A stretch of DNA of 32,325 bases from Octopus bimaculoides (Eukaryota). Positions within the stretch are counted from its first letter, which is position 1, and each line of letters opens with the position of its first letter. The notes beneath the pieces were generated by a model, which searched no databases, had not been told where the DNA came from, and saw nothing but the letters and a program-made list of their open reading frames with translations. A program made the translations under genes and the position numbers. Location of the stretch: assembly GCF_001194135.2 (NCBI RefSeq), contig NC_068993.1, positions 17,848,809 through 17,881,133 on the forward strand. The letters are read 5' to 3'. Shown here piece after piece: positions 210 through 29,134 of this stretch.

Positions 210-218
210 CTCTATAGT

Positions 219-1435: not shown

Positions 1436-1439
1436 CACC

Positions 1440-4034: not shown

Positions 4035-4074
4035 AGGATATTCAAATGGCATCTTATCAACAGACTTTTTGGAC
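4035..4074 (-). CDS. 40-nt juxtamembrane exon ([14 protein letters not shown]), phase 2->0, Box1-like position
   Basis: Acceptor ctttctggttttcag|G and donor CCT|gtaagt. The phase continues the TM exon (CG|G = Arg). Confidence 0.8.
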
Positions 4075-5217
4075 CTGAAAACCAGAAAGTGATAAGTTTA
4101 ATGAATTAAAAAGCTGAAAGTAAGTAGACTAATGTTTCAACTGGAATTAAATACTTTTAGACAAGTTGCTAGCATTAATATATAAATACTAGTTGGGTAT
4201 TTCACTGCTGGGCAATTTTCTTAATAGAATACTTATTACAATTTTTTGTTCTGTGTTAGACCATATCTTCTCCAGTGGATAGGATTCTTGATCAGGAGAG
4301 ATCTCTGCATTATTTGGGACAATTTATAACGTATTGATGAAATATGTTTTTGCTTTTTCTATTTGGTGCAAAGATGTAAAGATTTTTCTTAGCTTGCTAC
4401 TAATGCATTGTGAGGGTCTTTTGACTCTGTTGCCCTAATGAAATTCCTTATAGACATGCACACACACATACCGTGTGAGCGATGTAAAATTTATCTGATG
4501 CAAATTATGGACACATAAGAGGTGCAGCAATATCTAAGGAAGGTTAAGAGAGCAGATGTATAGGTACAATAAGCACTAGAAATATACAGAAAATAGATTG
4601 CATCAAATACTAGATGGGGGGGGGGGGTATGCCTAGAAATAGTTGTTAAATGATGATGTGTATATGTATATATATGTATGCATGTATGTCTCACTCTCTC
4701 TACACACACATATATATATATATATATATANNNNNNNNNNTAAAAAAGGGTTTTGTATGATCGTGTATAGAGGAATATATTATTTAAAAGAGTTCCAACT
4801 CTGTCTGTTTTTTATGTTTTATTTATATTCTTATAAAATTAATGCGGGATATAGAATATGGAATATATAATATAAATAGTAAAATGAAATGAAGTATTGA
4901 ATGTCTTATTGAATATAAGAAATATTGAGTATTAAATATATAAGGACTAGTATACTTTCATGCCTCATGGCATTCATCAAGGTCCCGTCTGACAGATGTA
5001 CTGTCAGTACATCTGACTTGTATACTTTCATGAGGCATGAAAGTATACTAGTCCTTATATATTTAATACTCAATATTTCATATTTTCAATAAGACATTCA
5101 ATACTTCATTTCATTTTACTATTTATATTATATATTCCATATTCTATATCCCGCATTAATTTTATAAGAATATAAATAAAGCATAAAAAACAGACAAAGT
5201 TGGAATACTTTTAAATA

Positions 5218-5265
<48 letters not shown>

Positions 5266-8200
5266 ACACACATACACGACAGGCTTCTTTCAGGTTCAAA
5301 TCCACTCATAAGGCTTTAGTTGGCCCAGGACTATAATAGAACACACTTGCCCAAGGTGTAACACAGTGGGACTGAGTTCAGAACCTTGTAGTTGGAAAGA
5401 AAACTTCTCACCTCACAGTCATGCCCACATCTATATGATAATGATGATGATGCTGATTTTCAAGAGCACTACAAAAAAAAAATCTACAACAGTTGTCACT
5501 CACAAGTGAGTATGACTTGTAGAATGTATCATGCTTTTGATAATCATTTTATGTGCCTTCACAGCTGCAAGCAGCCATGGACATTCTCTTGGCTCTCTCA
5601 CCGTGTAACCTAGCAGAACATCCAGGATGTGACAGCTGAAGGATATGATAACTGTGCCAGCACTTGGCTTGTACTCATTTAGTTAAGTGAGGTGGAGCTA
5701 CATGAAGTGAAGTGTCTTACTGAAGGACACAATGCATCATGTTCTAGGAATCGGATCCATGACTTTATAATTGTGAACATAATGCCCAAACCATTTGGCC
5801 AAGGGTCTTACGAGAGCAATCATTACTGTAAATAAAGTATGTGTCTGACTTCAATACCTCGAATCATTCATGGTGAGCTCAGAGAAAAACAAAGGGCATA
5901 GAGGCCTTGCTTGAAAAGCATTCAGTGATATGAAGAATATCAAAATATCCAGCCTTTTTAGACATAAATCTCTATGAGTATGAAACTTGGAATTTTACTA
6001 GTCCCTCAATGGCTATTGTTTTCAGATGCTCCAGATAACCTTCAGTGTTTGCTGGATGCAGAAAGTGACCAATGAAGAATCTATGCTGATCTTCCCCAGT
6101 TTATAGCAGGAAGATTTAAGAAGGTGACAGTAACTTGCTGAGTATTGTCTGAGACACCTAAAGTGTGTTGCCTGCCAGCCAAGACATTATCAGGAAATGC
6201 TCAACTCATGTGATGATGGATCATCAAGTCTTCTAAGACTCTGGTGGAGTACATTGGTACTATGATAGCTGAACACAAGACACTGATGATGGAATGGGAT
6301 ATGTGGCATATCTGTCATCATGATCAATACAAATGGAAGTTGTAGTTGACAGAGGATGTGGATAAATGATGAAATATCTTAGATGATTAAACAATAAACC
6401 CACATGCATCTCTATCAAAGCATCAGTGTTAAAATTTCTCTGTAAATTTCATTTAGCTAACCATAAAATGTACATTTATAACATATTTCTCTTAAAGAGG
6501 TTAAAGTAGCTGACCACACTAAGAAATTATTTACTAGTTGATTTCAGTTATCTGTTATTTAAAAAAAAAAAAACATAAGTAAGAGAAACAAAAAATATTG
6601 ATTCCATACCGTTTCACATAGGAAAACACAACCACCAAAATAATCAGTATAATAACTAGAGAGCCGATAATGCTCAAAACGACACCTGGAAAAAAAATGG
6701 TAAAGAAATTAATAAAATCACAATGGCGAAAGTGTGAATGAATGAACGAGCCCATTCATCTTTCTACTCACCTATCCATCCATCCATCCACTCATTCAAC
6801 TAACCATTTAATCAATCAGTTATCATTTAATGTCCATTTTTATGCTACATCAAGTGGACAGTTCAGCAGGATCCATCTAGCCTGAGAGATGTGTTTACCT
6901 CCAGTGCTTGCCTTGGCTAGGTTTCTGTGACTGGATGTCCTTCCTCACACCAGCTACTTTACAGAGTGTATTGGGTGCATATTTTGTGACACCAGCACCA
7001 GTGGGATTATTGAGAAATATGCAAGACAAGACCCCTTCATAGAGAGACAGGCTGAACTGGAAATAGTGTCTTGCTATAGAAAAGATACATTCTTTTTCTT
7101 TGTTGTGTATCCAGCAGGAAAGAAAGGATGGTGGAAATAAGGCAGCAGAATGTACTTGCAAGGTAAAAGAAGGTGGATAAAGAGAGTAGGAGTAGAGAAT
7201 CAGGGATGGAAGTATGGGGAGGTAGAGGGGATTAGGTAAAGTGTGTGTGGAAGTGAGGGACACAGACCAAATGTACACAGAGCTAGATATAGTGAGTTAC
7301 AAGAATGGGTGTTGATAGCAGAGGTGACAGAATGTTTAGTGGGACTGAGTTTAGTTATATATATATATATGTAAATATATAAAAACAAAAGGATAAAGAG
7401 AGCAAAGGCAAGGTTGAAGAATTTTATGGATAGAGTCTTACAGCTGTTTCTGGGAAGATCCAGTACTTCCCTTCATCGGAGACAGAAAAAATAAAGTTAT
7501 CTATTATTATATCCATAGGCGGATATTTTTAGTATGAAGTGGTNNNNNNNNNNGGGATTAGGTAAAGTGTGTGTGGAAGTGAGGGACACAGACCAAATGT
7601 ACACAGAGCTAGATATAGTGAGTTACAAGAATGGGTGTTGATAGCAGAGGTGACAGAATGTTTAGTGGGACTGAGTTTAGTTATATATATATATATAAAT
7701 AAATATAATGAAAATGAAAAAATACATATTAAGTACAAGACATCACCAACGAGTAAAAAATACGTAAAAACACAAGAGAAGGGAGAAGGAAAGAAAGAGA
7801 GTGAAAGACAGACAGATGGGGTACAGCAAAGGAGAGGGAGAAACAGAAATATAAAGGATTATAGTGGGATAGAGAGAGAGAGAGAGAGAGAGAGAAAGAA
7901 AACAGGCAGAGAACAGAGTCACAGAAATTATATATAAATGTAAAAACTTACTGCTGGCAAAGGCTGTGTGGTGTTCAATTATTAAATAGAAATGAAAAAA
8001 TACACATTAAGTACATGATATCACCAACAAGCCAAAAAAATGTAAACACAATGAGAAGACAAGTACAGGACAAAATACCACACAGGGTGCAGTGAACAAA
8101 TTGTCTGAATTAAGGAAAAATCAAAATAACATCTCATTTTAATGGATATATTTACCGAAATTATATAAACATATCTTGAAATATTAGAGTAAATTTATTC

Positions 8201-9447: not shown

Positions 9448-9491
<44 letters not shown>

Positions 9492-9912
9492 GTGAGAATT
9501 TACAAAAAAAAAACAAAAGATGAAGACGGGTGTGTAAACAGCAAACAGATGTATTAGTTTAATGTTCAGGAAGTGAAAAACCCTTTTACATTTTGAGCCT
9601 ATGCTATTCGACAGAAAGGAACACAGAAATAGACAGGAAGAGAAAGTAAAAATGGTTTAGTGGCTAGCAATCTATCATGGCGAATGCCGGGCAGAGGGGT
9701 CACACATACACACACACAGATATATATATATATATATATAAATATATCAGGAGATAGATAGGTCCAGTCTTTGGGGTTACCCTGGATTCCACGTCCATAA
9801 AGTGCTTAGCTTCACAGCATTTCTTCAGACCCTCCCTAGGCTTATATACTCTACTACTATGTAACTTAGAGTGTGCTTCTTTTTGGGACTTATAATTTAC
9901 TGATGATGATGA

Positions 9913-9971
<59 letters not shown>

Positions 9972-12900
9972 TACTTAATAGTGTAGGTTATGGGCTAGTC
10001 ACTCATACAGTTAACCAGGCATTGCATGAAGGAGTCATATCCAATGACTGGTGCAGCATCACCATAGTCAACTGCTACAAAGGTAAAGGCGATGCCTTAG
10101 AAAGAAATAATTACACCGGTATCAAATTGTTGGATCAGATGATGAAAATCCTGAAGAGAGCCATAGCACAACTAATTAAGGAGAGAGTTAATCTACATAA
10201 GATGTAGTTTGGTTTTGTGCCAGGGAGAAGAATCACTGATGCTATATTTCTGGTAAAGCAGTGGCAGGAGAAATACATTGACAAAGATAAATCACTGTAT
10301 TTGGCTTTTGTTGGCATGGAGAAAGCCTTTGACAGGGTCCCTGGTACCTTATCTGGTAGTCAATGTGGAAACTAGGGATAGATGAGTGGTTAGTGAGAGC
10401 TGTACAAGCCATGTACAGGGATGCTGTCAGTAAGGTGAGGGTTGGCAATGAGTATAGAGAAGAATTTAGGGTACAAGTAGGGGTTCACCAAGGATCAGTC
10501 CTCAGTCCCCTCTTGTTCATTGTAGTCCTCCAGGCAAAAACAGAGGAATTCAAGATAGGCTGGGAGCTCCTCTGTGCTGATGACCTTGTTCTTATAGCTG
10601 AATTACCAGAACTAGAGAAGAAGTTTCAGGTGTGGAAGCAAGGTCTAGAATTGAAGGGTCTTATAGTTAATCTAGCAAAAACCAAAGTTTTAGTAAGTAG
10701 GAAAGCAGACAAATTACAAATATGGGTGTGGACAGTTGTGTGAAGAAGTGCCAATCTCTACCAGTGGAAGGAAGCTGTGGAAGAGCTAGACAAGGTGGTG
10801 AAGCATGATCTTTAAATGTTGGGCCTCACAGTGGCAATGACTAGTGACCAGGATCTTTGGTGATATGCTGCGCTTGAGAAGACTCGTCAAGTCAAGTGAA
10901 ATCATAGTTGTGGTCAATTTTGGTGTCATGTAACTGGCACCTGTGCTGGTGGCATGTAAAAATCACCCTTCAAACGTTGAGCCTCATGGAGGCAATGTGG
11001 CCATTGCTAATGTCACGTAACTAGAACCCATGCCAGTGGCACCTAGAAAGCACCTTTTGAGTACTGGGCCTCATGGAGGCAATAACAAATGACCAAGACC
11101 TTTGTCAAACCATCCAACTCATGCCAGCATGGACAACAGATGCTAAATGATGATGATAAATATTTTATATATATATATATATATATATACACTGGGCAAA
11201 GTTTAGAGAGCTCTTACCCCTGCTGGCGACAAAGGGACTCTCACTCAGAGTAAAAGGCAGACTGTATGACGCATGCGTACGAACAACCATGCTACATGGC
11301 AGTGAAACATGGGCTGTAACTGCTGAGGACATACGTAAGCTCGCAAGGAATGAAGCCAGTATGCTCCGTTGGATGTGTAATGTCAATGTGAATACCCGTC
11401 AGAGTGTAAGTATCTTNNNNNNNNNNNNNNNNNNNNNNNNNNNNNNNNNNNNNNNNNNNNNNNNNNNNNNNNNNNNNNNNNNNNNNNNNNNNNNNNNNNN
11501 NNNNNNNNNNNNNNNNNNNNNNNNNNNNNNNNNNNNNNNNNNNNNNNNNNNNNNNNNNNNNNNNNNNNNNNNNNNNNNNNNNNNNNNNNNNNNNNNNNNN
11601 NNNNNNNNNNNNNNNNNNNNNNNNNNNNNNNNNNNNNNNNNNNNNNNNNNNNNNNNNNNNNNNNNNNNNNNNNNNNNNNNNNNNNNNNNNNNNNNNNNNN
11701 NNNNNNNNNNNNNNNNNNNNNNNNNNNNNNNNNNNNNNNNNNNNNNNNNNNNNNNNNNNNNNNNNNNNNNNNNNNNNNNNNNNNNNNNNNNNNNNNNNNN
11801 NNNNNNNNNNNNNNNNNNNNNNNNNNNNNNNNNNNNNNCGAGCGTGGCCGTTTTCGTGCGGGTGACACGTAAAAGCACCCACTACACTCTCTGAGTGGTT
11901 GGCGTTAGGAAGGGCATCCAGCTGTAGAAACTCTGCCAAATCAGACTGGAGCCTGGTGTTGCCATCCGGTTTCACCAGTCCTCAGTCAAATCGTCCAACC
12001 CATGCTAGCATGGAAAGCGGACGTTAAACGATGATGATGATGATGATGATGATGAAAAGCAGATCTGGAGAAATGTTAGGACAGAAGCTAGGAGATGTGA
12101 ACTATGCAGTAAGAGGGAGAGACACTCAACCAGACCTTGCACATCCAAGGGTAAGGAACGCAAGTACAGATTCTGAGTGAGTAACAGCACTGGAGTTTGA
12201 TGAAGCAATCATATTGTTAGCAGAGAAATGGATAAAATAATGCTATCAGTACAAACAGATCAGCAAAATGACCATTTCCATGAGATACTAATGCAGACTA
12301 CCTCAATATTAATCATCAACCTCATTATCATTAGTGATAACTTTATGAGCAAGTTGGTTGATACTATGATGGTTAATCTAATGTTTATGATGAATATGTT
12401 CATGGCACATGAATGAAGATGAATCAAAACTGTTATAGCTCTGCAATGCAAACGGCTTCAGGAAACTGGCCAACCACCAGAGTACCTATGAACCAGGTGC
12501 ATGTGCTAGTCAGATAGACTCCACACACACCAGGGAACAAAGCAGACAGTTCTGCATACTAAATATTTCCTTGGAGAGATGTTGACATTCTTTGTTGGCA
12601 TTACAAGAAGTTGCACTGCAATTCCAAAGATGTTTGTATAAAAGAAAATCTCTCACTTGAAAAACGAGTAAAAGTTGGTGACACAAAGACCACCCAATTG
12701 CAAAATTTTCCTTAAATAACTCCCAGTCCAAATCTATACTAGCATGGAAAAATAGACATTAAATAAAGTGTATCAAAGTCCTAAATAACTAATGTTTCTT
12801 TTCAACTTTTATTTTTAACCCTTGAGCATTCACATTACTCTATAATATTGTAGCTTTGAGATTTCAATTATTTATAGAATGACATTGTAGGTTAGGTGTG

Positions 12901-15502
12901 AAAAGCGAGATCTGACCATTTGAACATAAAACAGGTAAAATATTTGGGCTAGATAGGGCTGCTTTAAATGCTAAAGAGCTATATAAGTAGTGTGATTTGA
13001 AAGAAATTTGATTATTAGTTCTAGCGAGTTTGGTGAGCATAAATTAAAATGGTAGTCTTAATATTAATGAAGTTATAGGTTAGTTAATAACTGCTGATTG
13101 CTCTCTAATTAATGAATGAACGTAGATGTACACTTACTTTTTCCATCCACTTGGATTTCCTGAGTCATCACAGGACCATCACCTATACTTGTCGAAGATT
13201 TCACCCATACTAAATATTTATTTTTGGATAAATCATCAATTACGTATTTCTTTTCCTTCTTTGATATATGCTTCTCTTGGATTTTACCTGAAAAAAATGA
13301 AAGGAAACAAAAATAATAAAAAAAAGACAATGACAATGCCACCACCACAATTATTATTACTTTGTTTTAAACTGGAGCCATGTACCAAAAGATATTTCAA
13401 TCTTCAGCCTTCAGATTTAGCCTGAGAACAATTGTCAAGAGGGATGAAATATTGGTATTTAACACAAGCACAAAGTCCTGCATTTTAACTCTTTTCATAT
13501 CAATTCATCTAAGACTGCCTCTGGTTGTGTAATGCAAAATCATTTGATTTTAAAGTATCATCATCATAATGTTCGTTTTCCATGCTGGCATGGGTTAGAC
13601 AGTTTGACATGCAGCTGGCCAGCCGGGGGACTGTCCAGACTCCAATCATTTGTTGTGGCTTGGCTTCTACAGCTGGATGCCCTTCCTAATGCCAACCACT
13701 TTACAGAGTGTGCTGGGTGCATTTATGCAGCAGTTGCATGAGTGCATTTTATGTGGCAAGAGTACCAGTAAAGGACAAGCCTGTATGTTATTTAAATTCT
13801 ACCTTTCTATCATAATTCTAAGACAAAAGAAACTATTGCTAAAATTGTGTTCTAAACACTTTCTTAATAAGGGGAAAATTACATGTTATACTAAAGCCTT
13901 TCAAAGTCTAGATTACTTTGGAAATTACACAAAACATTTTGGTAGTGGATAGGCAGGGGCAAGGTTGTATGGTTAAGAAGTTCCACTTCACAAGGTTCTG
14001 AGTTCAGTTCCACTGTGAGGTACCTTGGGAAAGCATCTTCTCTCGTTAGCCTAGGTCAACCAACACATTCTGAATGAATTTGGTAGATGGAAACTGTTGA
14101 AACTCATGAATGCATGTGAAAGCATTTTTGTGTTTATTTCTCACCAGGCATGGCTGAGTGGTAAGAAGCTTGCTTCCCAACTACATGGTTCTGAGTTCAG
14201 TCCCACTTCATGGCACCTTAGGCAAGTGCCATCTACTATAGCCCTGGGCTGACCAAAGCCTTGTGAGTGGATATGGTAGACTGAAAGAAGCCCGTCATGT
14301 GTGTGTGTGTATATATCATCATCCTCGTCATCATCATCATCATTTAACATCCGTTGTCCATGCTGGCATGGGTTGGATGGTTTGACCAGGGCTGGTAAGC
14401 TGGAAAGCTGCACCAGGCTCCGGTCTGATTCGGCATGGTTTCTATAGCTGGATGTCCTTCCTAACACCAACCACTCTGAGAGTGTAATGGGTGCTTTTAT
14501 GTGCCACCGGCACAGATGGCATTCACGTGACCCCAGTATTTGCTATGACTGCTATTTTACTTGACTTGATGGGTCTTCTTGAGCAGGATATATGCCAAAG
14601 GTCTCAGTCATTGCATCTGAGAGGCCCAACACTAGAAAGGTGCTTTTTAGGTGCCAGTTACGTGACACCAGCATCAGCCACAACTATATTTTCACTTGGC
14701 TTGAAAGCACAGCATACTGCCAAAGGTCTTGGTCACTAGCTATTACCACTGTGAAGCCCAAAGTTTGAAGATCCTGCTTCACCACCTCGTCCCATGTCTT
14801 CCTGGGTCTACCTCTTCCACAGCTTCTCTCCACAGGGCACTTCTTTATACAGCTGTCCTCGTCCATGTGCATCACATGACCATACCAGTGCAGTCATCTC
14901 TCTTGCATACCACATGATGCCTCTTATGCCAAACTTTTCTCTGAAGATGCTTATGCTCAGTCGAACATGCACACTGACATTGCACATCCAGTGAAGCATA
15001 CTGGCTTCATTTCTTTCAAGCCCATGCATGTCCTTGGCTTTCATAGATCATGTTTCACTACCATGTAGCATAGCTGTTTGCACACAGGTATCATACAATC
15101 TGCTCTTTAGTCTGAGGGAGAGGGTCTTTGTTGCCAGAAGAGGTAGGAACTCTCTGAACTTTGCCCAGCCTAAACTTATTCTCACAGCTATGCTTTGGAG
15201 CACCCACCTCCACTACTAACTTGGTCACCTAGATAATGGAAGCTATCTACTACCTCTACCTTACCCACTGGCAGTTGATGGAGTCTATTTTCTATTGTAT
15301 CTGTGCATCTGCTACACACAAAAACTATCTTCCCAGTAACCTTCCTTTGATATTGCTGCACCTCTTATGTGTCCATAGCTTACAGTGGATACATCTTATG
15401 GAGTTTTTATCTATGCCTTTTTTACAGATCAAGCAGGGCCATTTACCTGAAGGGATTTGTGATTTGTCAGCCTTCCTACTTGCAAAGAGTTTGGTTATGT
15501 AC

Positions 15503-15546
<44 letters not shown>

Positions 15547-18470
15547 CATCTTTTTTCTTTTTTCTTTCCTCTGATGATATTGTGCTCATGTCACATAAAT
15601 GTAAATTTAATGTTTATTGTATTGAAACAGCTGTAAGTGAAGATGACCAATTTGCTGTTAATAATAAACAATTATTAACTTAACAATCTCCATTCTCTTC
15701 TTTTAAATATATATAGATGTGTGTGTTTGTGTGTGTTTTCATGTATGTGTTTGTCTCCCACCACTGTTTGACAACCAGTGTAAGTGTTTATGGCCATGTA
15801 ACTTAGCAGTTCAGCAAAAGAGACTGATAGAATAAGTACCAGGCTCAACAAAAACATAAGTACTGTAGTTGATTTATTCAACTAAAAATTCTTCAAGGCA
15901 GTGCCCCAGCATGGCCGCAGTCTAATGACTGAAGCAAGTAAAAGAAGATAAAAAAAAATGAAGCTGACAACCAGTGTTGATCTATTTACTTAACAGTTTG
16001 GCAGAAAGAGACTGATGGAGTGAGTATCAAACTTTAAACAAACAAGTCCTGGTGCTTGGGAATTCAATTTGATTGTCTAAACTGGTGGTTCTCAACATGG
16101 GACATTTGCCCCACCAGTGGGGCCGGAGAAAACAATGGTGTGTGTGTGTGGGTAGGGGGTGTCCAAAATTATTTTCTTTCTGTTTTTTTTTTCTTTTTAG
16201 TGGGATATGGAATTNNNNNNNNNNNNNNNNNNNNNNNNNNNNNNNNNNNNNNNNNNNNNNNNNNNNNNNNNNNNNNNNNNNNNNNNNNNNNNNNNNNNNN
16301 NNNNNNNNNNNNNNNNNNNNNNNNNNNNNNNNNNNNNNNNNNNNNNNNNNNNNNNNNNNNNNNNNNNNNNNNNNNNNNNNNNNNNNNNNNNNNNNNNNNN
16401 NNNNNNNNNNNNNNNNNNNNNNNNNNNNNNNNNNNNNNNNNNNNNNNNNNNNNNNNNNNNNNNNNNNNNNNNNNNNNNNNNNNNNNNNNNNNNNNNNNNN
16501 NNNNNNNNNNNNNCGAGGTGTTGTGTGTGTTTATTGAGCGAAAACACCTAAAGCTCCACAAGGTTCTGGCAGGGGATGGTGGCAAACCCTGCTGTACTCT
16601 TTCACCACAACTTTCTCTTTCTCTTACTTCCTGTTTCTGTTGTGCCTGTAATTCAAAGGGTCAGCCTTGTCGCACTGTGTCACGCTGAATATCCCCGAGA
16701 AATACGTTAAGGGTACACGTGTCTGTGGAGTGCTCAGCCACTTGCACGTTAATTTCACGAGCAGGCTATTCCGTTGATCGGATCAACTGGAACCCTCGAC
16801 GTCGTAAGCGACGGAGTGCCAGGAAGTGCTACTCTAATGTCCTAGTGTGGATATTTCTCTAAGGAAAGTATATAATTATGAGAAGTCAATACTCAGCACT
16901 TAATAAAAGAGTTACCAATAGATTCAAATAATTGAGATAATATATTTACCACTGGTGGGGCATACATTTTTCTGGAAAGTTATAGTAAGGACCAGAGGGA
17001 AAATAGGTTGGGAAACATTGGTTTAAACCTCTGAAAGCAGTTCCCTAGCATGGCCATAGTTCAATGACAGAGACCAGTAAAAGAATCAAAAGGAGTCAGA
17101 GTGTAACACATTAAAAATATTGTCAAATGTAATGTTTATATGCTTCGGGCCAGGCCGAGTTCGCAACTGCTAGGGAGTTGATCAAGATATAGCAGAGACT
17201 CCATCTAAGAAGATCTGAAGAAGGAATTGTATTCCGAAATATCATCGGACTATAGATAACTAAATTACAACAGGTATATAGTCCATTTTTTGTATTATAG
17301 TGCATTGTTGTACCATTCAAAACTTTTTATTCTTTACAAACAATACACAATGCTTTAAGCGAACTACAATACTCTCCTATATTTATATTGTTTTGAATTT
17401 ATCATGCATTATCTTGTAGTTTAGAGATGTGAATGATATGATTGCTTAGTTTTAGAATGATATTGTAAGGATGGCATGAGAGGCCAGATCTAGCCAGTTT
17501 CAATACAAAACAGTTTAAATATTTTGGCCAGACAAGGTCGGTTTGAATGCTAAAGGGTCAAAGGAGGAGAGTTAAAAAATCATTCCCAGCAATTGATGGA
17601 AGATGGAATAAAAAAGAATTGAAATATGGTTCTGAAACTAATCCTTTTGTTACCATATTTATGTTAAAACATACTGCCTTTGTTTCAATTAATTTCAAAA
17701 TACTTACTTGTATTCAGTACTACTCTACTTCTAACTAAGTATTGAATTACATAGTGTTTATATCCATTATTGGCTAAAGGTCAACTTAGCCATTCAATAA
17801 TTACAGATTGATAAAGATGCATCAGACCAAGAACTGAGATCAATGTCATGTGATCACATAACCAAGCAAGCTATCAGATGTTGTTACACATCGCTGGTCA
17901 CAATGCATTTTTTCTTTTTGCATTGTTTTAGTCTTCAAATGACACCACCCCAGTGGCTCGGTGAGCAGACCAACATTCCCCCACTGACTGAAAGGGGAAC
18001 TGGAGCAACATGAAATGAAGTGTTTTGCTCGAGAACACAATGTGCCACCCAATCAGGGAATGGAACCTATGATCTAGCAATTGTGAGTGCAACAGCCTAA
18101 TCACTGGGCCACATGCCTAGAGATCAATGTAACTGACTAAAACCCCGGCAAATGGTACCTAAGCATGGCAACAAACCAAATAAACCAAATGCTAAAACTC
18201 ATAAATAAAATTAGAATATGTACTTACCTTCACATTTTGTTTTATTAAAAGAAACACAGTAAGATACTACATAATTAGTAACATAGGCTTTCTCAATGTA
18301 GCAGTTATAATGGTCCCATTCTACAATAAGAGTGCTGTCTTTAGCATTAAGTCTAAACTCTACAGGGTTTTCAGGTTCTGAAATTAAAGAAAGAAAAAAA
18401 ATGGTGAATTCTTTTAATGAAAACAGGGAAAATGAAATAGTAAATTATTTGGTACTGGTGAAGTAAACAA

Positions 18471-18512
<42 letters not shown>

Positions 18513-18825: not shown

Positions 18826-18862
<37 letters not shown>

Positions 18863-21800
18863 GGTGGCAATCTGGCAGAATCATTGGCACACTGAGCAAA
18901 ATGCTTCATAGCATTTTGTTCATGTTTATATTCTGACTGTGCCTTTCTTCTTTCAAGGCCGATAAACTAAGCATCAGTCAGACTGGAGCCTGGTGTAGCC
19001 ATCTGGTTTCACCAGTCCTCAGTCAAATCGTCCAACCCATGCTAGCATGGAAAGCGGATGTTAAACGATGATATATCTATATATATGTATATATATAATA
19101 GCTGATGATATATAATAGCTGGTAGTTCTGGTATTTAGAGGTGTGCTTAGTCACATGAAGGCATGAAGCATTTCTCTCCTTAAGAGAATTAACAAGTGGA
19201 AGGTCAGCTTTAATCATGATTGAAGCTGTTATAAATTTTAAATGTCATTTGTGCTTACTTTGCATACTTATGCCACACTAAGGACCAACCCCAGAGTCAA
19301 ATCAATGGTTAGAAATTGCATTTGGTATTTGCATATCTACAGTACCATACCAAGGCTTGATACCTTGGATGTTGCTTACCTCTTGTTTTTGTACTTATCC
19401 ATTTCTAGCATACTACATATTTATGTGCCTAGATTCCAATGAATCCATATAACTAAATCATGTGTGTGTGTGTGTATTAGTATATATGTGTGTGTTTGTG
19501 TGTTAGTATATATGTGTGTTTGTGCACGTGTATATTTAGTGTGTATCCTTGTCTTGACATCATGTGATGGTTGTAAACAAACATTGCTGTCATACAAATG
19601 ATGTTGCTTGCTTTCAGTCTCTCACAGAAAACATGTCTGGCTATTTGAAGTGTTACTGTGCTTGGATACAGGTGAAGGCTGGCAACAAGAAGGGCATCTA
19701 ACTGTAGAAAATCTGCCTCATCACAAATCCATCTGACCAGTGCACGCATGAAAAAGTGGGTGTTAAACAATGATAATGATAATTTCATACCTCATTTTCC
19801 AAGCTGATGTGAATTGTGTATACTTACCATGTGTACATATGTACTTGTGCATACAATAAAAAAAAAACAAAAAAAACAAAACAGGTAGACAAACAGACAA
19901 GAAAAAAGGAATCACAAAAATGACAGAAAATGTAGAAAAAGTTGGGGTGAAATATACTTTTTAAAATGAATAGACATGGCGACCAAATCAATCCACTAGA
20001 TCCTTCTTCATTTTCTGCTGACACAGCAAAACTGTATGAATTAACATTTGTATTCACTGATAGATTCTTTGATGTTTCATTACCATTCACGTAATTCCAT
20101 GTGCAGTTTCTCTGAATGAAGGAGAAATGGAGAAGAACATCATTTGTCTGTTCAAGAAAAAATTAATTTGCTCATAAAAGAAACTTTCATTCTTACCTTA
20201 CTCTTTACTCTTTTACTTGTTTCAGTCATGTGACTGAGGCCATGCTGGAGCACNNNNNNNNNNNNNNNNNNNNNNNNNNNNNNNNNNNNNNNNNNNNNNN
20301 NNNNNNNNNNNNNNNNNNNNNNNNNNNNNNNNNNNNNNNNNNNNNNNNNNNNNATTTTTAAGTGATCTCATATGAGATCACTGGTAGGTAATGGGTTAAA
20401 TTTTACTCAGGAAGTGTTGTTCATCCTGAGGCTATAGTAGAAAATCCATCCTTGCCCAAGCAAAGTGCCTTTCTTTCAGATCAAGCCCCAAATCTTGTGG
20501 TTGTGAAGTATACTTCTTAACCCTAAAGCCATACCTGCATCTTCTCATAATACCCACACATACACTTATGCATGCACATGTGACAATGAAAATGCACAAT
20601 TTATAAAAATAGGAAATATGTTGCTAACCTTTTGATTTATCACAAATGCGTATAGATGATGGTGGTTTTGAAAATCCAATAGAATTCTTAGCCCATATTC
20701 TTATATTTTCACAACTGGTATTGTTTAGTGATAATTTGAGTAACAATTTGTTTCGAAAGGCTGTTATATTTGAATTTTTATTCTGAATAAGATATTCAAC
20801 ATTTTCATCCCCAAATTCTTTTCTCGTTAAGCTCTGTGGAGAGAGAAGTAAATAAATCAAAATAAATTATTTGTTACATAGAGATAGACACTCCACAATA
20901 ATACAAACAAAAGTATACAATTAACTCTGGAAATAGGTAATATGTTTAAAAGAACAACTGAGCTATCATACTGCATTCCAGTATGATTTTCCAGTTATGA
21001 AAAAATCTTGAATAGATAGCATGTGGGTAAATGGATTTTACCCTGTAGTACTGTTACTACTTACTTCTCAGTCAGAGATTTAAAACTAATTGCTTTCCTC
21101 TTTATATNNNNNNNNNNNNNNNNNNNNNNNNNNNNNNNNNNNNNNNNNNNNNNNNNNNNNNNNNNNNNNNNNNNNNNNNNNNNNNNNNNNNNNNNNNNNN
21201 NNNNNNNNNNNNNNNNNNNNNNNNNNNNNNNNNNNNNNNNNNNNNNNNNNNNNNNNNNNNNNNNNNNNNNNNNNNNNNNNNNNNNNNNNNNNNNNNNNNN
21301 NNNNNNNNNNNNNNNNNNNNNNNNNNNNNNNNNNNNNNNNNNNNNNNNNNNNNNNNNNNNNNNNNNNNNNNNNNNNNNNNNNNNNNNNNNNNNNNNNNNN
21401 NNNNNNNNNNNNNNNNNNNNNNNNNNNNNNNNNNNNNNNNNNNNNNNNNNNNNNNNNNNNNNNNNNNNNNNNNNNNNNNNNNNNNNNNNNNNNNNNNNNN
21501 NNNNNNNNNNNNNNNNNNNNNNNNNNNNNNNNNNNNNNNNNNNNNNNNNNNNNNNNNNNNNNNNNNNNNNNNNNNNNNNNNNNNNNNNNNNNNNNNNNNN
21601 NNNNNNNNNNNNNNNNNNNNNNNNNNNNNNNNNNNNNNNNNNNNNNNNNNNNNNNNNNNNNNNNNNNNNNNNNNNNNNNNNNNNNNNNNNNNNNNNNNNN
21701 NNNNNNNNNNNNNNNNNNNNNNNNNNNNNNNNNNNNNNNNNNNNNNNNNNNNNNNNNNNNNNNNNNNNNNNNNNNNNNNNNNNNNNNNNNNNNNNNNNNN

Positions 21801-21898
21801 NNNNNNNNNNNNNNNNNNNNNNNNNNNNNNNNNNNNNNNNNNNNNNNNNNNNNNNNNNNNNNNNNNNNNNNNNNNNNNNNNNNNNNNNNNNNNNNNNN

Positions 21899-21940
<42 letters not shown>

Positions 21941-22633: not shown

Positions 22634-22677
<44 letters not shown>

Positions 22678-22688
22678 CATACATATAC

Positions 22689-22752
<64 letters not shown>

Positions 22753-22913
22753 CAATGAGCTTCTTTTAATTTCTGTCTACCAAATCCACTCACAAGACGT
22801 TGATAGACACAAGGCTATAGTAGAAGACATTTGTCCAAAGTATCATGGAATAGGACTGAACCCAGAACCATGTGGTTGAGAAGCAAGCTTCTTACCACAC
22901 AGCCATGCTTGCA

Positions 22914-22953
<40 letters not shown>

Positions 22954-25900: not shown

Positions 25901-28900
25901 GAAGGATAGGGTATGGCTATATATGATCATAATGGATAAAAATACATGTTATATAGGTTCAGTGCATGAATATATATTAAAATATAATTATTATTATCTA
26001 CGAGTAGATAGATACATGTAGGAGTACATAAAAAGTTACAAAATCATAGGATAAATGCTAATCACATATGGAGTAGAGCATTTGTATATGCATTCACATA
26101 TGTATATATGTGATTGCATATTTAACATACATGTGATTGCATATTTAACATACATGTGATTGCATACATATTTAAGCATATAGATAGACAAATATATATA
26201 CATATATATACAGTGAAATTTAATATTAAAATATGATGTGCATGTTTTTACTGCTTAAACTTGAATTACAGATGAGGCTCTTTAAAAAACTGTAGCTTCC
26301 ATTTTAAACATCAGAAGTTCGAAATGCATAGTTACAATTTACTTCCAAGAAATGGAAATTATTTATGACTTGACCCAATGCATACACATACACACACACA
26401 CACACACATATATATCAGTATCCTCATCATTTAGCTTCCATTTTCCATGCTGACATGGGTTAGATAGTTTGACTGGGACTGGCAAGCCAGAGAGCTGCAC
26501 CAGCTGCCAGTCCGATTTTGGCCTGGTTTCTACAGCTGGATGTCCATCCTAATGCCAACCACTCCAAGAGTGTAAGCAGTGCCTTAAATGAGTGACTGAC
26601 ATGGTAGCTTTCATGTGTCACTGACACAGGTACTTTTACATGTCACTGGACATCAGCCCTGATTATGGTTTCACTTGATGGGTCTTCTTAAACACAACAA
26701 ACCACCAAAAGTCTCACACACTCGCCATCACCTCTTTGAGACACAACTTTCAAAGGTCATGCTTCACCACCTCATTCCATGTCTTCCTGGGTCTACCTCT
26801 TCCACAGGTTCCCTCCACAGTTAGAGACTGACACTTCTTTACACAGCCGTCCTCATCCATATGCATCATACCAGCACAGTCATCTCTTGATACTTCTTAT
26901 CAAATACCCTAACTCTCGTGAGGATTTAACCCTTTAGTATTTAAACTGGCTGTATACAGCCCAAATATTCCTTTTGTTTTATGGTGAAAGTGACTAGATT
27001 TTGCCTCTCAATGTCATTCTAAAAATAAAGAATCACTTCACTGAAATCTCAAAGCTACAAGATAATGCATGATTAATTCAAAACAATGCAAATAAACAAG
27101 CATTACATTTGACAGTAATCTGAATGCTTAAGGGTTACATGATGTATTTTAAAATTAACCTAGTGCAATTATTGACATCAGGAGCATCTCATAAATGAAT
27201 GTCCATTAATTTAAGAATATTTAGGTCATTATTTCTGATCAACAAAATAGAATGCATGCTCCATTTTTAATGATTGAACTGAATAAAACCATGTAACACT
27301 AATACTTGTTTGGGGACCTGAAATTTCTCAAAACAAAATCACATCTGTGAGGAACTGACTCTTCCTCCTCCTCCTCCTCATTCGCCGCCACTGCCACTGC
27401 CACCACTACCACCATTTAATGTTTTCCATGCTGGCTTGGATTGAATAGTTTGACAGAAACCGGTAAGGCGAGGAACCACACCAGGTTCCATAGTCTGTTT
27501 TGGTTTGGTTTCTGTGACTGATGATGATAATGGTGATGGTGAGCATGAATGAATAAGCATTATATTTGTCAGAGTAATCTGGATGCTAAAGATTTCAAGA
27601 GAAAAGTACATTTCCTCATGTGAAACATATCTCGCAAATCCAAAGGTACCATGGAAGTACCTTTGGACTTGCTCAATATAGTATGTTAGCGAGTCTTGAA
27701 GATGATAAGCATAGTGGTCGGCCATCGGATGTTGACAACGATCAACTAAGAGCCTTAGTCGAAGCCAATCCACGCACAACTGTTCGAGAGCTTGCTTCTG
27801 AATTAGACATAATGTATATGACAATTTCCAGCCACTTGAAAGAGATTGGAAAGTAGAGTCAAACCACAAAATGAAGATTTTAACCACACTGCCACACCTG
27901 CAATTAGTAACTGCAACTTGACACCCTGTCTCAGGAAAAGCATTGTAGTATCTATGCAAATCAGGATCAGGCAGGTTGAGCAGAAAAAAGAAGCCAGATC
28001 TATCCAATATGCAACACGCAGAATGTTTTGTACCCATACTAGACTTGTCAGCCACTCTTAGACACAATGTTTGAGTTCTTTGGACCCAAAAGTGACATCA
28101 TGGTCATCATTTATATGAAAGATCTAAAGCAGGGGTTCTCAACCATTTTTCCTCTATGGACCCTTGTAATTACTGTTTTATTCTGGTGGACCCCCATAAC
28201 CATTTGATGTTTGAAAACTAGTTTTATAGAAACTTCTTTCGTAATTCCTATTTTGTTATTTCACACATTAGCTTGTGTAGGTTGAACTATGTAAAATGTT
28301 AGAGAAAGAAACTTAGTTGTTTCTTGCAATGCATACCAATACATATGTTTAACACAACATTTTTTTCTGAAGCCCTTAAAATACTAATATGGATCCCCAA
28401 TTTACTATTTTGTGGTGTGGACCCCCAAAAATCATATGGAACCACTGGTCTAAAGTATCTCATAAAACAAAAACAGCACAAAAAGAAAACAGAAATATTA
28501 TACTTTGAACCCTCGATTTCTGATTGCATTAAAAGAGTCCATATTGAGATATGATATTTCTTGGGCAATTTAAACAAGATGAAGCCTATCACTCTACAGT
28601 GAGTGAGTCAGTGAGTGCATGCGTATGCATGAGAGAGAGAGAGAGAAGGGACATCAACTTTAATACTGAACTGGTATTTTATTTACTGACCCTAAAAGGA
28701 TGAAAGGCAAAATTGACCATAGAAGGATTTGAACCCACTACACAGAGCTAGACTGAATACTACAAGGCATTCTACTCAACCATCTAACAAGCCTGCCCAA
28801 CTCACTGTCTATTACTGCCTAATTTATCATAGGCATATCAGATACTAATGAAAACCAAGTTAGTTCATTTTCAAAATTTACATAAGTTGTAGCATGTCAA

Positions 28901-29134
28901 GAATTCTAACATGTCAACAAGAGTTCCACAGGATTGTGATGATAAAATATTATGTTCAACAGGATTCTAATTACAAGAATTTGAAAACATTTTGAACACT
29001 TACCAATTTTTTAGAGTCCACTTCTTTTAAGAAAATATGAAAGACTAGCTTATAGATATAGCGATGTTTCCATCTTATAGTCACACAAGTGTCATTAATA
29101 TTCAAATCGACGTTCTTCACAGGTGATGGTTGGG
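4035..29134 (-). CDS. dome: Partial multi-exon gene: Domeless/gp130-like tall class I cytokine receptor (4 FN3 + TM + juxtamembrane)
   Basis: Nine exons with AG/GT boundaries and phases that chain in frame, except for one junction that spans an N-gap. FN3 Trp/Tyr patterns, many N-x-S/T sequons, a single TM helix. Motifs [49 protein letters not shown] and YVVSYC recall invertebrate Domeless. The symbol is a homolog-family name from motif recognition, not a database hit. Confidence 0.8.
4775..5223. repeat. Long inverted repeat / foldback element (195-bp arms, about 97% identical, 59-bp spacer)
   Basis: 4775-4969 is the reverse complement of 5029-5223 with about 6 mismatches by manual comparison. 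There are internal hairpins at 4993-5015 and 5020-5048. Confidence 0.95.
5262..5425 (-). mobile_element. tRNA-SINE 5' half
   Basis: Matches the main family head and middle; adjoins (GT)n at 5225-5262. Confidence 0.75.
5850..6380 (+). mobile_element. Degenerate RTE-clade LINE 3' ORF region (different family)
   Basis: Decayed KVTNEE.Y.DLP...HC.RH...ASQ-type C-terminal RT pattern with many stops; read by eye. Confidence 0.45.
6610..6685 (-). CDS. Transmembrane exon ([26 protein letters not shown]), phase 1->2
   Basis: Acceptor ttttttccag|GT and donor AAA CG|gtatgg. 76 nt. About 21 hydrophobic residues followed by KR stop-transfer. Confidence 0.9.
7228..7696. repeat. Exact 143-bp direct duplication (7228-7370 = 7554-7696) across a 10-N gap
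   Basis: Direct comparison; the second copy starts at the first base after the gap. Confidence 0.9.
7435..7483 (-). ncRNA. Minimal type I hammerhead ribozyme motif (U4C core variant), Penelope-type
   Basis: Minus strand: GTCT-CCGATGA-A-GGGAAG[tactggat]CTTCCC-A-GAAACAGCTGTA^AGAC. Stem I 4 bp, stem II 6 bp, palindromic stem III ACAGCTGT, GUA cleavage triplet. Confidence 0.72.
8083..8745 (-). mobile_element. Tc1/mariner DD37D (maT-type) transposase relic with terminal repeat
   Basis: [12 protein letters not shown]...WQQDSAPCH...[15 protein letters not shown], with 37 residues between the 2nd and 3rd Asp. Two in-frame TGA stops in the core. End CAGGGTG at 8083. Confidence 0.88.
8880..9450 (-). 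mobile_element. RTE LINE 3' fragment
   Basis: [22 protein letters not shown]...LREKLDIR matches the plus-strand RTE at 11190-11416. Confidence 0.85.
9515..9700 (-). mobile_element. Penelope-like terminal fragment with a decayed hammerhead-like motif (9583-9618)
   Basis: CTTT-CTGTCGA-A-TAGC[atag]GCTC-AAAATGT-A-AAAG has hammerhead topology with a degenerate core. Confidence 0.4.
9985..11155 (+). mobile_element. RTE LINE reverse transcriptase region + 3' UTR, internally deleted
   Basis: [51 protein letters not shown] and (Y>C)ADD motifs; (GAT)n tail near 11150. Confidence 0.92.
11190..12055 (+). mobile_element. Young 5'-truncated RTE LINE (interrupted by a 422-N gap), (GAT)n tail
   Basis: [11 protein letters not shown]...[10 protein letters not shown]...; CpG-rich; 3' end catgctagcatggaaagcggacgttaaacg(atg)n. 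Confidence 0.9.
12060..12735 (+). mobile_element. Old degenerate RTE endonuclease-region fragment
   Basis: Traces of EML..R..D....Q and LAEKWIK.I parallel to the 1440-1950 copy. Confidence 0.4.
13138..13287 (-). CDS. Exon, FN3-D second half ([50 protein letters not shown]), phase 1->1
   Basis: Acceptor tttttttcag|GT and donor AAA A|gtaagt. 150 nt. Y.I..L....Y.V.V...T..G.GP is an FN3 pattern. Confidence 0.9.
13555..13745 (-). mobile_element. RTE 3' UTR fragment
   Basis: catcatcat...ttttccatgctggcatgggtt...cagctggatgcccttcctaatgccaac, shared with the other RTE tails. Confidence 0.8.
13953..14315 (+). mobile_element. Two adjacent tRNA-SINE 5' halves (about 13953-14135 and 14145-14315)
   Basis: Both have ggttctgagttcagt(t)ccact and the ttgggaaag/ttaggcaag middle of the main family. 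Confidence 0.8.
14316..15502 (-). mobile_element. 5'-truncated RTE LINE inserted at the SINE internal microsatellite
   Basis: (CAT)n tail, full 3' [24 protein letters not shown] and SGKWPC.IC.KG..NSI.C..CK.W.HK.CS zinc-finger-like segment; (TA)n at the 5' end. Confidence 0.9.
15715..15950 (+). mobile_element. tRNA-SINE 3' half
   Basis: ttgacaaccagtg...gtaacttagcagttcagcaaaagagactgatagaataagtac...gcagtctaatgactgaa. Confidence 0.8.
16083..17020. mobile_element. hAT-type MITE with 8-bp TSD, interrupted by a gap and a younger insertion
   Basis: Ends (t)ggtggttctcaac ... gttgggaaacattg; flanks gtctaaac (16075-82) and gtttaaac (17021-28). Confidence 0.65.
16514..16822 (+). mobile_element. CpG-rich young interspersed element (probable SINE body), 5' end in the gap
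   Basis: GC and CpG content far above the flanks; no ORF; nested in the hAT MITE. Confidence 0.5.
17212..17246 (+). ncRNA. Minimal hammerhead-like motif (antisense to the receptor gene)
   Basis: GAT-CTGAAGA-A-GGAAT[tgt]ATTCC-GAAATAT-C^ATC. Canonical core, 5-bp stem II, palindromic ATAT stem III, AUC triplet, 3-bp stem I. Confidence 0.55.
17815..18118 (-). mobile_element. tRNA-derived SINE (third family); related copy at about 5620-5800
   Basis: Minus-strand head tggcccagtgattagg...ggttccattccc, then gagcaaaacacttcatttcatgttgctccag. Confidence 0.65.
18228..18377 (-). CDS. Exon, FN3-D first half ([50 protein letters not shown]), phase 1->1
   Basis: Acceptor ttctttaatttcag|AA and donor GAA G|gtaagt. 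150 nt, open. Not in the ORF track. Confidence 0.9.
18510..18827 (-). mobile_element. 5'-truncated RLE-type non-LTR retrotransposon (R4/Dong-like) 3' end
   Basis: [28 protein letters not shown]...IPII...LG...LLGTAHILR is a restriction-like endonuclease C-terminus. Flanked on both sides by (TAA)n. Confidence 0.8.
18975..19072 (+). mobile_element. RTE 3' terminal fragment
   Basis: Nearly identical to 11941-12030. Confidence 0.85.
19535..19785 (+). mobile_element. Non-autonomous element ending in an RTE-like tail; second copy at about 31185-31435
   Basis: Both copies start ccttgtcttgaca... and end ...gggcatc...gtagaaaatctgcc...gcatg(g)aaaag...(atg)n. Confidence 0.6.
19958..20111 (-). CDS. Exon, FN3-C second half ([51 protein letters not shown]), ends phase 1
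   Basis: Acceptor ccttcattcag|AGA; an alternative AG 2 nt downstream is possible. Weak donor AAA A|gtatat. Domeless-type GSSG.IW..C motif. Confidence 0.85.
20254..20353. other. 100-N assembly gap (other gaps: 1951-2050, 4731-4740, 7544-7553, 11417-11838, 16215-16513, 21108-21898)
   Basis: Runs of N. An exact 100 N usually denotes unknown gap size. Confidence 0.95.
20629..20833 (-). CDS. Exon, FN3-B second half ([14 protein letters not shown]...[25 protein letters not shown]), phase 0->1
   Basis: Acceptor tctctccacag|AGC and donor AAA G|gttagc. 205 nt = 68 codons + 1. I.A.N..G.S motif. Confidence 0.88.
21980..22062 (-). CDS. Exon, FN3-B first half ([28 protein letters not shown]), phase 1->0
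   Basis: Acceptor cttctttgcag|TT and donor TGG AAG|gtaaac. 83 nt. Not shown in the ORF track. P..P.I..GSF...VTVFW motif. Confidence 0.88.
22745..23112 (-). mobile_element. Two tandem tRNA-SINE 5' halves separated by (TA)n
   Basis: Both match the main family head and middle in reverse orientation. Confidence 0.8.
23166..23310 (-). CDS. Exon, FN3-A second half ([48 protein letters not shown]), phase 0->1
   Basis: Acceptor tattttcag|TTG and donor AGT G|gtaagt. 145 nt. L.P...Y.L.I.A......YSEP is an FN3 C-terminal pattern. Confidence 0.9.
23645..23995 (+). mobile_element. Internally deleted mariner (MITE-like), both TIRs, TA TSD
   Basis: Left tattagtttgtcaagaaagttctt against right aagaactttcttgacaacctaata (1 mismatch). 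The interior encodes only [14 protein letters not shown]...[17 protein letters not shown]. Confidence 0.9.
24074..24172 (-). ncRNA. Hammerhead-like core with extended stem II, probably inactive
   Basis: CTGAGGA-GATACAAC...GTTGTATC-GAAACATGT(G). 8-bp stem II with an internal 8-bp helix TATACAGG/CCTGTATA. G at the cleavage position and no stem I. Confidence 0.5.
24430..25390 (-). mobile_element. Possible highly decayed Penelope-like RT relic
   Basis: Only faint motif traces with many stops. It lies upstream of the hammerhead-like motif on the same strand and is separated from it by an RTE tail at about 24339-24428. Confidence 0.25.
25396..25803 (-). mobile_element. tRNA-derived SINE (main family), best preserved full-length copy
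   Basis: Minus strand: aggcgtaggagtggctgtgtggtaag...ggttccgggttcagtccc (A/B boxes), internal microsatellite, CpGs retained. Confidence 0.9.
26108..26166. repeat. 23-bp tandem repeat x2.5 (atgtgattgcatatttaacatac)
   Basis: Direct reading. Confidence 0.9.
26420..26890 (-). mobile_element. RTE 3' UTR / C-terminal fragment
   Basis: Colinear with 14330-14900. Confidence 0.85.
27690..27856 (+). mobile_element. Mariner transposase HTH fragment
   Basis: [38 protein letters not shown]...[10 protein letters not shown] is a mariner N-terminal/HTH signature. Confidence 0.88.
28130..28447. mobile_element. hAT-type MITE (318 bp) with 8-bp TSD
   Basis: caggggttctcaac ... ggaaccactg; flanks atctaaag (28122-29) and gtctaaag (28448-55). 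Confidence 0.8.
29004..29134 (-). CDS. Exon, FN3-A first half ([43 protein letters not shown]), phase 1->0
   Basis: Acceptor ttttacag|CC and donor TTG|gtaagt. 131 nt = 2 + 43 codons. P.PV.N..L......V.I.W is an FN3 N-terminal pattern. Confidence 0.88.

Follow-up and report, generated by a model that had tools for sequence, protein, structure and literature searches.

Exon structure, assembly gaps and gene models

The window analysed here is a stretch of 32,325 nucleotides (nt) from Octopus bimaculoides, 100% identical to chromosome CM046613.1 (assembly GCA_001194135.2), with a GC content of 37% and seven runs of N. It holds exons 5 to 14 of one gene, which lies on the minus strand and encodes a receptor of the gp130/Domeless type. 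To recover the exons, stop-to-stop open reading frames (ORFs) were combined with inspection of splice sites, and translations were then matched to database proteins. An earlier note on this DNA, made from the letters alone, had listed nine short exons between positions 29134 and 4035. All nine (9/9) are there on the minus strand, bounded by canonical AG...GT sites, far beyond what chance would give, and the two outer coordinates coincide to the base with the start of E1 and the end of E8. Translations of the nine match O. bimaculoides proteins of NCBI and metaclust at 100%; the exons are 85% identical to those of the O. vulgaris orthologue, and lengths and splice sites are the same in both species. 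The list is correct in these nine but incomplete. It overlooked a micro-exon of 12 nt (AG-CCTTTGCCAGCA-GT), also used by the NCBI model P0003 and the only place in the window where AG-CNTTYGCNWSNA-GT matches, and it lacked one exon, for half of a fibronectin type III (FN3) domain, and the exons of the cytoplasmic tail. All ten assembled exons (10/10) have open frames, AG/GT sites and the lengths seen in O. vulgaris (Table 1). Intron phases are regular, with phase 1 between domains and phase 0 within most FN3 domains. E8 ends in phase 1 at a GTAAGT donor, so the gene runs on past it.

NCBI annotates two 'uncharacterized' models here. The first, P0002 (XP_052828325, LOC106880493, 393 residues), covers E1 to E3; it reads through the E3 donor and ends KG* (20627-20629). 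The second, P0001/P0003 (XP_052828530, LOC106882248, 208/210 residues), covers E4 to E8, and P0003 reads through the E8 donor to end PVS* (4026-4035). P0003 begins with a 6-nt exon, 'ATGCAG' ('MQ', 20540-20535), located within a microsatellite-like ORF. This 'MQ' exon was considered for the lost FN3 half that leads from phase 1 to phase 0 and was rejected as an artefact. Judged from the comparison with O. vulgaris set out below, LOC106880493 and LOC106882248 are one gene divided by assembly gaps, and the two gaps that fall in its coding part account for the split into two models.

Table 1. Coding exons of the receptor gene in the window and the two gaps that bear on its coding sequence (CHR, cytokine-receptor homology region; FN3 domains numbered from the CHR towards the membrane)
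Feature	Position	Strand	Description
E1	29134-29004	-	N-terminal half of second CHR domain (equivalent of gp130 D3); phase 1 to 0; 100% identical to P0002 residues 206-248
E2	23310-23166	-	C-terminal half of second CHR domain; degenerate WSXWS position (NGIYSEPYV); phase 0 to 1
E2b	22062-21980	-	First half of membrane-proximal FN3 number 1; phase 1 to 0; 82 nt from a 791-N gap
E3	20833-20629	-	Second half of FN3 number 1; phase 0 to 1
100-N gap	20254-20353		Stand-in for about 5 kb; predicted to hide a 46-codon exon, the first half of FN3 number 2
E4	20111-19958	-	Second half of FN3 number 2; phase 0 to 1; acceptor backed by O. vulgaris
E5	18377-18228	-	First half of FN3 number 3; phase 1 to 1
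E6	13287-13138	-	Second half of FN3 number 3; phase 1 to 1
Micro-exon	7963-7952	-	12 nt, between E6 and E7; adds ..TFAS.. to the stalk before the transmembrane helix
E7	6685-6610	-	Single transmembrane helix; phase 1 to 2; helix at 593-620 in the AlphaFold2 model of the orthologue
E8	4074-4035	-	Juxtamembrane segment, minimal box-1-like motif; phase 2 to 1; donor G/GTAAGT
100-N gap	1951-2050		Stand-in for about 13.5 kb in O. vulgaris; predicted to hold the last two coding exons (cytoplasmic tail)

The protein is laid out as a signal peptide, an immunoglobulin (Ig)-like domain, a two-domain CHR, three membrane-proximal FN3 domains, one transmembrane helix and a disordered tail of about 200 residues. 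On L001 the window ends at 20958, and exons outside it (L001 10001-17604) supply most of the 205 N-terminal residues of P0002: this part comprises the signal peptide, the Ig-like domain and the first CHR domain, CHR D1 (L001 14764-17604). Within the window, E1 and E2 form the second CHR domain, and the three FN3 domains are formed by E2b with E3, the lost exon with E4, and E5 with E6. Of the four FN3 domains that the earlier note placed before the transmembrane helix and juxtamembrane segment, the first in fact belongs to the cytokine-binding module, as its second half.

The nine exons had also been taken to splice into one continuous ORF, and this fails at a single junction. The end of E3 is in phase 1 but the start of E4 in phase 0, the sole phase break among the exons, and whichever of the two candidate acceptors of E4 is used, a direct join runs at once into a stop. 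The true acceptor, by comparison with O. vulgaris, is at 20111 (RNCTW...). The other one, at 20147, is used by NCBI and presumably by the earlier note; it was rejected, as it adds 12 residues of intron sequence. The content of the gaps was read from the gapless O. vulgaris locus (L003), by means of colinear blocks together with tblastn and blastn. An extra exon of 46 codons (VPDYPRNIEAIVLNSTTVWIKWESPKDNHTRVTRYTVYRCDKENHF, residues 393-438) is present there at L003 38497-38634, and the flanks of this segment align to window positions 20417-20572 and 19838-20199, on either side of a run of N. An exon of this kind (E3b) between flanks so aligned implies that the run of N at 20254-20353 replaces about 5 kb and would hide the N-terminal half of membrane-proximal FN3 number 2. 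No copy of the exon for residues 393-438 was found in the window by tblastn or blastn.

A similar comparison bears on the cytoplasmic tail. The last two coding exons of O. vulgaris, for residues 633-654 (L003 61460-61519) and 655-822 (L003 67028-67531), lie 3.2 and 8.7 kb downstream of E8. The colinear blocks around them (window 2878-3464 with L003 59726-60317, and window 1054-1379 with L003 73868-74197) place the tail exons (residues 633-822) in or around the gap at 1951-2050, window positions 198-1379 being already past the end of the gene. Neither the O. vulgaris tail nor exon E9 had a tblastn or blastn match in the window or in the 6 kb beyond it, and a splice-aware ORF scan of window positions 1-4034 for cytoplasmic exons downstream of E8 gave only repeat-like ORFs. 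The gaps at 4731, 7544, 11417, 16215 and 21108 fall in introns, and none of the O. vulgaris exons maps to them. As far as the alignments tell, the coding exons missing downstream of E1, one of the ectodomain and two of the tail, sit in or around two assembly gaps.

Kinship with gp130-type receptors

By family, the product of the window gene is a class I cytokine receptor of the gp130-type ('tall') group, with the topology of a type I membrane protein. Pfam, run on P0002, gives only weak generic fn3 matches and a sub-threshold LIFR_N, every cytokine-receptor-specific match being under threshold; on Pfam by itself the product would have been classed as no more than an fn3 protein. In relatives, CHR D1 has sub-threshold Pfam matches that are mainly to IL6Ra-bind, EpoR_lig-bind, LIFR_D4, CRLF2_D1 and TSLPR_D1. 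Searched with phmmer against PDB sequences, P0002 matches mostly the CHRs of class I cytokine receptors, which include the five best matches (GM-CSFR-alpha at 0.008, common gamma chain at 0.02-0.7), and over residues 107-275 the matches are all CHRs of these two receptors. A family profile of 22 members, P0002 being the first, was also searched against PDB. It matches full-length gp130 at E = 1.2e-63 by a single colinear alignment (profile 9-790, gp130 9-773), which covers the Ig domain, the CHR, the three FN3 domains, the transmembrane helix and box 1. OSMR (1e-43), LIFR (5e-41), IL12RB2 (1e-36) and LEPR (5e-24) come next. PTPRF is matched at 2e-28 over FN3 stretches only, and contactin likewise over FN3 only and no better than 2e-28.

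An exhaustive HMMER search of 1.84 billion representatives returned 86 relatives. Word-indexed protein searches are lossy, as they missed known proteins of 85% identity, and their blanks carry little weight. The O. vulgaris orthologue is a 'cytokine receptor isoform X1' of 822 residues, 85% identical, which corresponds to LOC115218375 of O. sinensis; the relative in Argonauta hians has 947 residues. Source names of the Mytilus relatives are 'cytokine receptor domeless', 'DOME', 'LIFR-like', 'OSMR-beta-like' and 'IL6ST-like'; those of Mizuhopecten and Patella are named 'LIFR', that of Liolophura 'LIFR-like' and that of Lingula 'cytokine receptor'. No catalytic domain was found by Pfam in the 822-residue orthologue or in the molluscan relatives of 1000-1300 residues that were examined.

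Predicted structures point in the same direction. The AlphaFold2 model of P0002 has a mean pLDDT of 89.8 and a pTM of 0.75, and its nine best Foldseek matches in PDB are chains of gp130, OSMR and LIFR, with TM-scores of 0.59-0.68 and root-mean-square deviations (rmsd) of 5-7 A over four domains. Contactin, NCAM and PTP-delta reach only 0.2-0.4, with an rmsd of 12-17 A. In the model of the O. vulgaris orthologue, six beta-sandwich domains with pLDDT about 90 are followed by a helix at 593-620 and then by a disordered tail. The 11 best matches of this model are the complete ectodomains of gp130, IL12RB2, OSMR and LIFR, with TMt of 0.47-0.64 over about 610 columns, except for OSMR at 0.39; the full gp130 ectodomain gives 0.54-0.64. 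Over both models, folds of Ig-type adhesion molecules and receptor protein tyrosine phosphatases (RPTPs) remain at TM-scores of 0.1-0.4 with an rmsd of 12-50 A, against 5-8 A for the cytokine receptors. The profile alignment, end to end with gp130, and these models bear out the layout suggested in the earlier note, that of a tall class I receptor with a cytokine-binding module followed by three membrane-proximal FN3 domains. The protein is not an RPTP, a receptor tyrosine kinase (RTK), ROBO, DSCAM or usherin, which the earlier note had named as best matches that would refute its reading; the best matches are of gp130 type, and catalytic domains are absent from the orthologue and its relatives.

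Sequence motifs add family hallmarks. The signature of CHR D1 is present in P0002 as C115-x9-C125-S-W127, and C-x9-C-x-W is unvarying across the 22 relatives. A second Cys pair of CHR D1 is present but displaced (C142/C152). This displacement is seen in the Octopus short paralogue (the window gene and its orthologues) by comparison with the C-P-x-x-T-x-T-S-C-x-W of other molluscs, and the Argonauta hians orthologue lacks the second pair; in the alignment this region corresponds to P0089 residues 140-160. SSG-x-x-W-x-x-C, conserved over the mollusc and brachiopod family, is located where the second membrane-proximal FN3 ends; the GSSG.IW..C motif pointed out in the earlier note is real and forms part of it. 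The conserved Cys, Trp and Pro positions are intact in the O. bimaculoides protein.

With gp130 (IL6ST), OSMR, LIFR and IL12RB2, the window protein shares the order of domains, a non-catalytic tail with a putative JAK-binding position near the membrane, and the first Cys pair and C-x-W of CHR D1. On the other hand, identity to this group is only about 15-17%. Molluscan and brachiopod receptors (Mytilus 'DOME', Pecten/Mizuhopecten and Patella 'LIFR', Lingula 'cytokine receptor') and LOC106881088, a longer receptor of the same octopus, display the same architecture and the motifs CxVYNW-x-MxCxWDLG, G-x-W-S and SSG-x-x-W-x-x-C. They differ from the window gene, which falls in a separate long-branch cephalopod clade and lacks both a proline-rich box 1 and the C-terminal PAH[FY][YF]...T[ED]L.

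Annotators' names ('cytokine receptor', 'domeless', 'DOME') point to Domeless as the best named match. Drosophila Domeless (the 'Cytokine receptor' of UniProt) is about 1280 residues long, compared with 822 in the orthologue of the window gene, and the octopus gene annotated 'domeless' is the other, long paralogue. Domeless of Drosophila and other arthropods is generally described as a single-pass receptor in which an N-terminal cytokine-binding module is followed by FN3 domains, and which works with one JAK and one STAT (PMC3296744, for part of this description). JAK and STAT have been reported in Mollusca, where 'IL6R' homologues cluster with Domeless (PMC13203501), and Aplysia has one JAK and one STAT (PMC9334734). 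A survey from 2026 traced 'IL6R' homologues with the layout SP-Ig-IL6R-FN3-TM to Mollusca; it leaves cephalopods unmentioned and reports no known ligand or IL-6-family cytokine in molluscs (PMC13203501). No paper dealing with a Domeless or gp130 receptor of cephalopods came up in our literature searches. Receptors of this kind in molluscs are thus already present in automated annotation and in the literature, and nothing categorically new is at hand. The O. vulgaris orthologue is already named 'cytokine receptor', and in O. bimaculoides the annotation has the gene only in the form of two uncharacterized fragments. The corrected model merges these two loci into one gp130-type gene and locates the gaps that hide coding exons.

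A short and a long paralogue, and their possible roles

A second gp130/Domeless-type receptor of O. bimaculoides, LOC106881088 (P0129), is encoded on the same chromosome by a gene of about 111 kb and has 1244 residues. Its counterparts are LOC115218400 in O. sinensis and the 'cytokine receptor domeless' in O. vulgaris, and accession numbers put it about 10-15 gene models away from the window gene in three Octopus annotations. The long paralogue keeps a proline-rich box 1 (IDNLPSLPDEP). Its tail has 556 residues, against about 207 in the short one, and carries the C-terminal motif PAHYF...TDL, where bivalves have PAHFYGSLSLLD...TEL. In long-type mollusc receptors (P0007, P0008, P0010, P0019 and P0129) the extreme C-terminus reads [PA]H[FY][YF]...L...T[ED]L, and the T-E/D-L end looks like a PDZ-binding tail.

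The window protein is 49% identical to its Argonauta orthologue and 24% identical to its own long paralogue. Over the 372 codons encoded in the window, comparison of O. bimaculoides with O. vulgaris gives dN = 0.083, dS = 0.149 and omega = 0.56, with no frameshift or stop; differences per site amount to 13.5% for synonymous and 7.8% for non-synonymous changes. This omega indicates that the gene is constrained, but loosely. In a neighbour-joining tree of lophotrochozoan ectodomains, the short cephalopod sequences form a long-branch clade with 100% bootstrap, composed of O. bimaculoides, O. vulgaris, Argonauta and a 943-residue protein known from transcript-like Logan contigs only. Bootstraps at the deep nodes are only 4-56%: the tree supports the short clade but not a point of origin for it, and the duplication may or may not be specific to cephalopods.

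Of at least two octopus paralogues, the window gene is the short and fast-evolving one, and it is not the sole or canonical Domeless orthologue; with at least two such paralogues, a one-to-one orthology with Domeless is unlikely. The earlier note had called its product 'the JAK/STAT receptor of an octopus', which claims too much in view of a longer and better conserved paralogue. Nor is a coupling to JAK/STAT supported as it was written: the WSXWS position reads YSEPY, box 1 is minimal and YxxQ is missing from both paralogues.

We nevertheless consider it probable that the window protein is a ligand-binding, JAK-associated subunit of the gp130/Domeless type, and that it signals either as a homodimer or in partnership with its long paralogue. 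Its Ig and CHR domains would bind a secreted ligand, which would drive homo- or heterodimerization, possibly with LOC106881088, so that the FN3 'legs' and the juxtamembrane segments are drawn together. A JAK held at the membrane-proximal box-1-like segment might then trans-activate and phosphorylate tyrosines of the tail, and the phosphotyrosines might recruit STAT. We infer the coupling to JAK/STAT from family membership and from the reports of JAK and STAT in Mollusca; the binding of a ligand and of JAK, the partner in the dimer and the activation of STAT are put forward in the same way, by inference.

Several features weigh against this signalling role. The canonical WSXWS is missing: G-I-Y-S-E-P-Y is aligned there in both O. 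bimaculoides and O. vulgaris, and other molluscs have G-[FY]-W-S-[DK], which is only half of the motif (G-x-W-S). Drosophila Domeless, too, is described with an incomplete WSXWS. At the position of box 1, E8 has only K[IM]PFEYPG, an [IM]-P-x-x-x-P element that the profile aligns to IWPNVPDP of gp130. The gp130 box 1 is I-W-P-x-V-P-x-P, compared with K-[IM]-P-F-E-Y-P here, and long-type molluscan receptors carry clear proline-rich P-x-x-P-x-P runs at this place that the short paralogue lacks. The tail of the O. vulgaris orthologue (residues 620-822) is disordered and contains 10 tyrosines, none of them in YxxQ, the STAT3 docking site of gp130; the long octopus paralogue has no YxxQ either. The tail also lacks the C-terminal PAH[FY][YF]...T[ED]L common to the long octopus paralogue and bivalve receptors. 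Identity between O. bimaculoides and O. vulgaris is 85% for the window gene against 96.5% for the long paralogue, which corresponds to an evolution about four times faster. Moreover, the tail exons and one ectodomain exon being unassembled, the O. bimaculoides gene can only be presumed intact from its sister species.

The same fold and family would also suit a protein that does not signal. The window gene could encode a short modulatory or decoy co-receptor, which pairs with LOC106881088 and tunes or damps its signal; we hold this to be possible, although clearly less likely than the signalling role. A long and highly conserved paralogue does share the chromosome, and the shorter tail, about 207 residues instead of 556, with a minimal box 1 and neither the C-terminal motif nor YxxQ, is consistent with such a part, as are the roughly fourfold faster evolution and the dN/dS of 0.56. 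Drosophila gives a precedent in Eye transformer/Latran, a short paralogue with a reduced tail beside a long signalling receptor, where a short receptor is reported to heterodimerize with Dome and to block signalling (PMC2914635, PMC4751595). A co-receptor of this kind would also be a functional analogue of soluble or short gp130 forms. The octopus short paralogue differs from Eye transformer/Latran in that it keeps the full Ig and CHR and a tyrosine-rich tail; the analogy is functional only. The wholly kept ligand-binding module, modelled with high confidence, the 10 tyrosines and the I/M-P-x-x-x-P element at the box 1 position all speak against a decoy, and YxxQ does not discriminate, because the long paralogue is without it too. 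The 393-residue NCBI model, if real, would be a secreted Ig-CHR-FN3 form, but it is most simply an artefact of the lost exon.

That the O. bimaculoides copy is broken or decaying, its lost exon and tail being true deletions and the two NCBI models a pseudogene, is improbable. As assembled, E3 and E4 are out of frame, and the exon for residues 393-438, E9 and the terminal exon are not found in the window or 6 kb beyond. Yet both lost segments map exactly to runs of N of placeholder length between colinear flanks, and the ten assembled exons, with their open frames, AG/GT sites and O. vulgaris lengths, retain the conserved Cys, Trp and Pro. The fairly high dN/dS of 0.56 may be cited for decay, but differences per site are still more frequent at synonymous than at non-synonymous sites (13.5% versus 7.8%). 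No transcript-derived full-length O. bimaculoides protein was found in the protein collection, a blank that weighs little given its lossy word index. Less probable still is a protein outside the cytokine receptors altogether, such as an FN3/Ig adhesion molecule or the ectodomain of an RPTP or RTK whose likeness to gp130 stems from generic FN3 only. It is true that Pfam gives only generic fn3 above or near threshold and that PTPRF, contactins, titin and DSCAM occur in the lists of profile and fold matches. These matches, however, are confined to FN3 stretches (2e-28 versus 1e-63) and to TM-scores of 0.1-0.4 versus 0.55-0.68, whereas the gp130 alignment is single and colinear over six domains, the transmembrane helix and box 1. 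CHR D1 bears C-x9-C-x-W, and catalytic domains are missing from the full-length orthologue and from every relative that was examined.

The pair formed by a short and a long paralogue is the sole mildly unexpected aspect of the locus. Octopus has at least two receptors, a conserved long one and a fast short one, and this matters for the choice of the JAK/STAT receptor to study, be it in haemocytes, in the white body or in regeneration. We suggest, quite tentatively, that the short, quickly diverging receptor of gp130/Domeless type might be a second one that arose in coleoid cephalopods and that pairs with the conserved long one or opposes it, within a heterodimer or as a decoy. If so, regulation of JAK/STAT at the level of the receptor would have arisen independently of Et/Lat in Drosophila and of the gp130 partner system of vertebrates, and the fast evolution might reflect a co-evolving ligand or pressure from pathogens.

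Repeats and transposon debris

Transposon debris is present in the introns and just downstream of the gene. On the plus strand, 10363-10743 encodes a reverse-transcriptase fragment (RVT_1, 2.7e-8), 1412-1684 an endonuclease fragment (Exo_endo_phos, 2.8e-4, under the Pfam cut-off) and 27620-27856 a sub-threshold helix-turn-helix fragment of Tc1/mariner type. Moreover, a SINE-like peptide (SINE, short interspersed element) recurs in many short ORFs on both strands of the window. Nothing in the O. vulgaris locus corresponds to positions 15088-16959, including the gap at 16215-16513, and the O. vulgaris sequence runs on unbroken at that point (L003 44856/44857); this segment of the window appears to be an insertion specific to O. 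bimaculoides in the intron between E5 and E6.

Two intronic repeats adjoin the 10-N gaps. An inverted repeat of 195 nt (4775-4969 / 5029-5223, 97% identical) lies next to the gap at 4731-4740, and the second copy of a direct repeat of 155 nt (7228-7382 / 7554-7708, also 97%) starts directly after the gap at 7544-7553. The repeats beside both gaps look like artefacts of gap closing or of haplotype duplication, or else like transposon ends.

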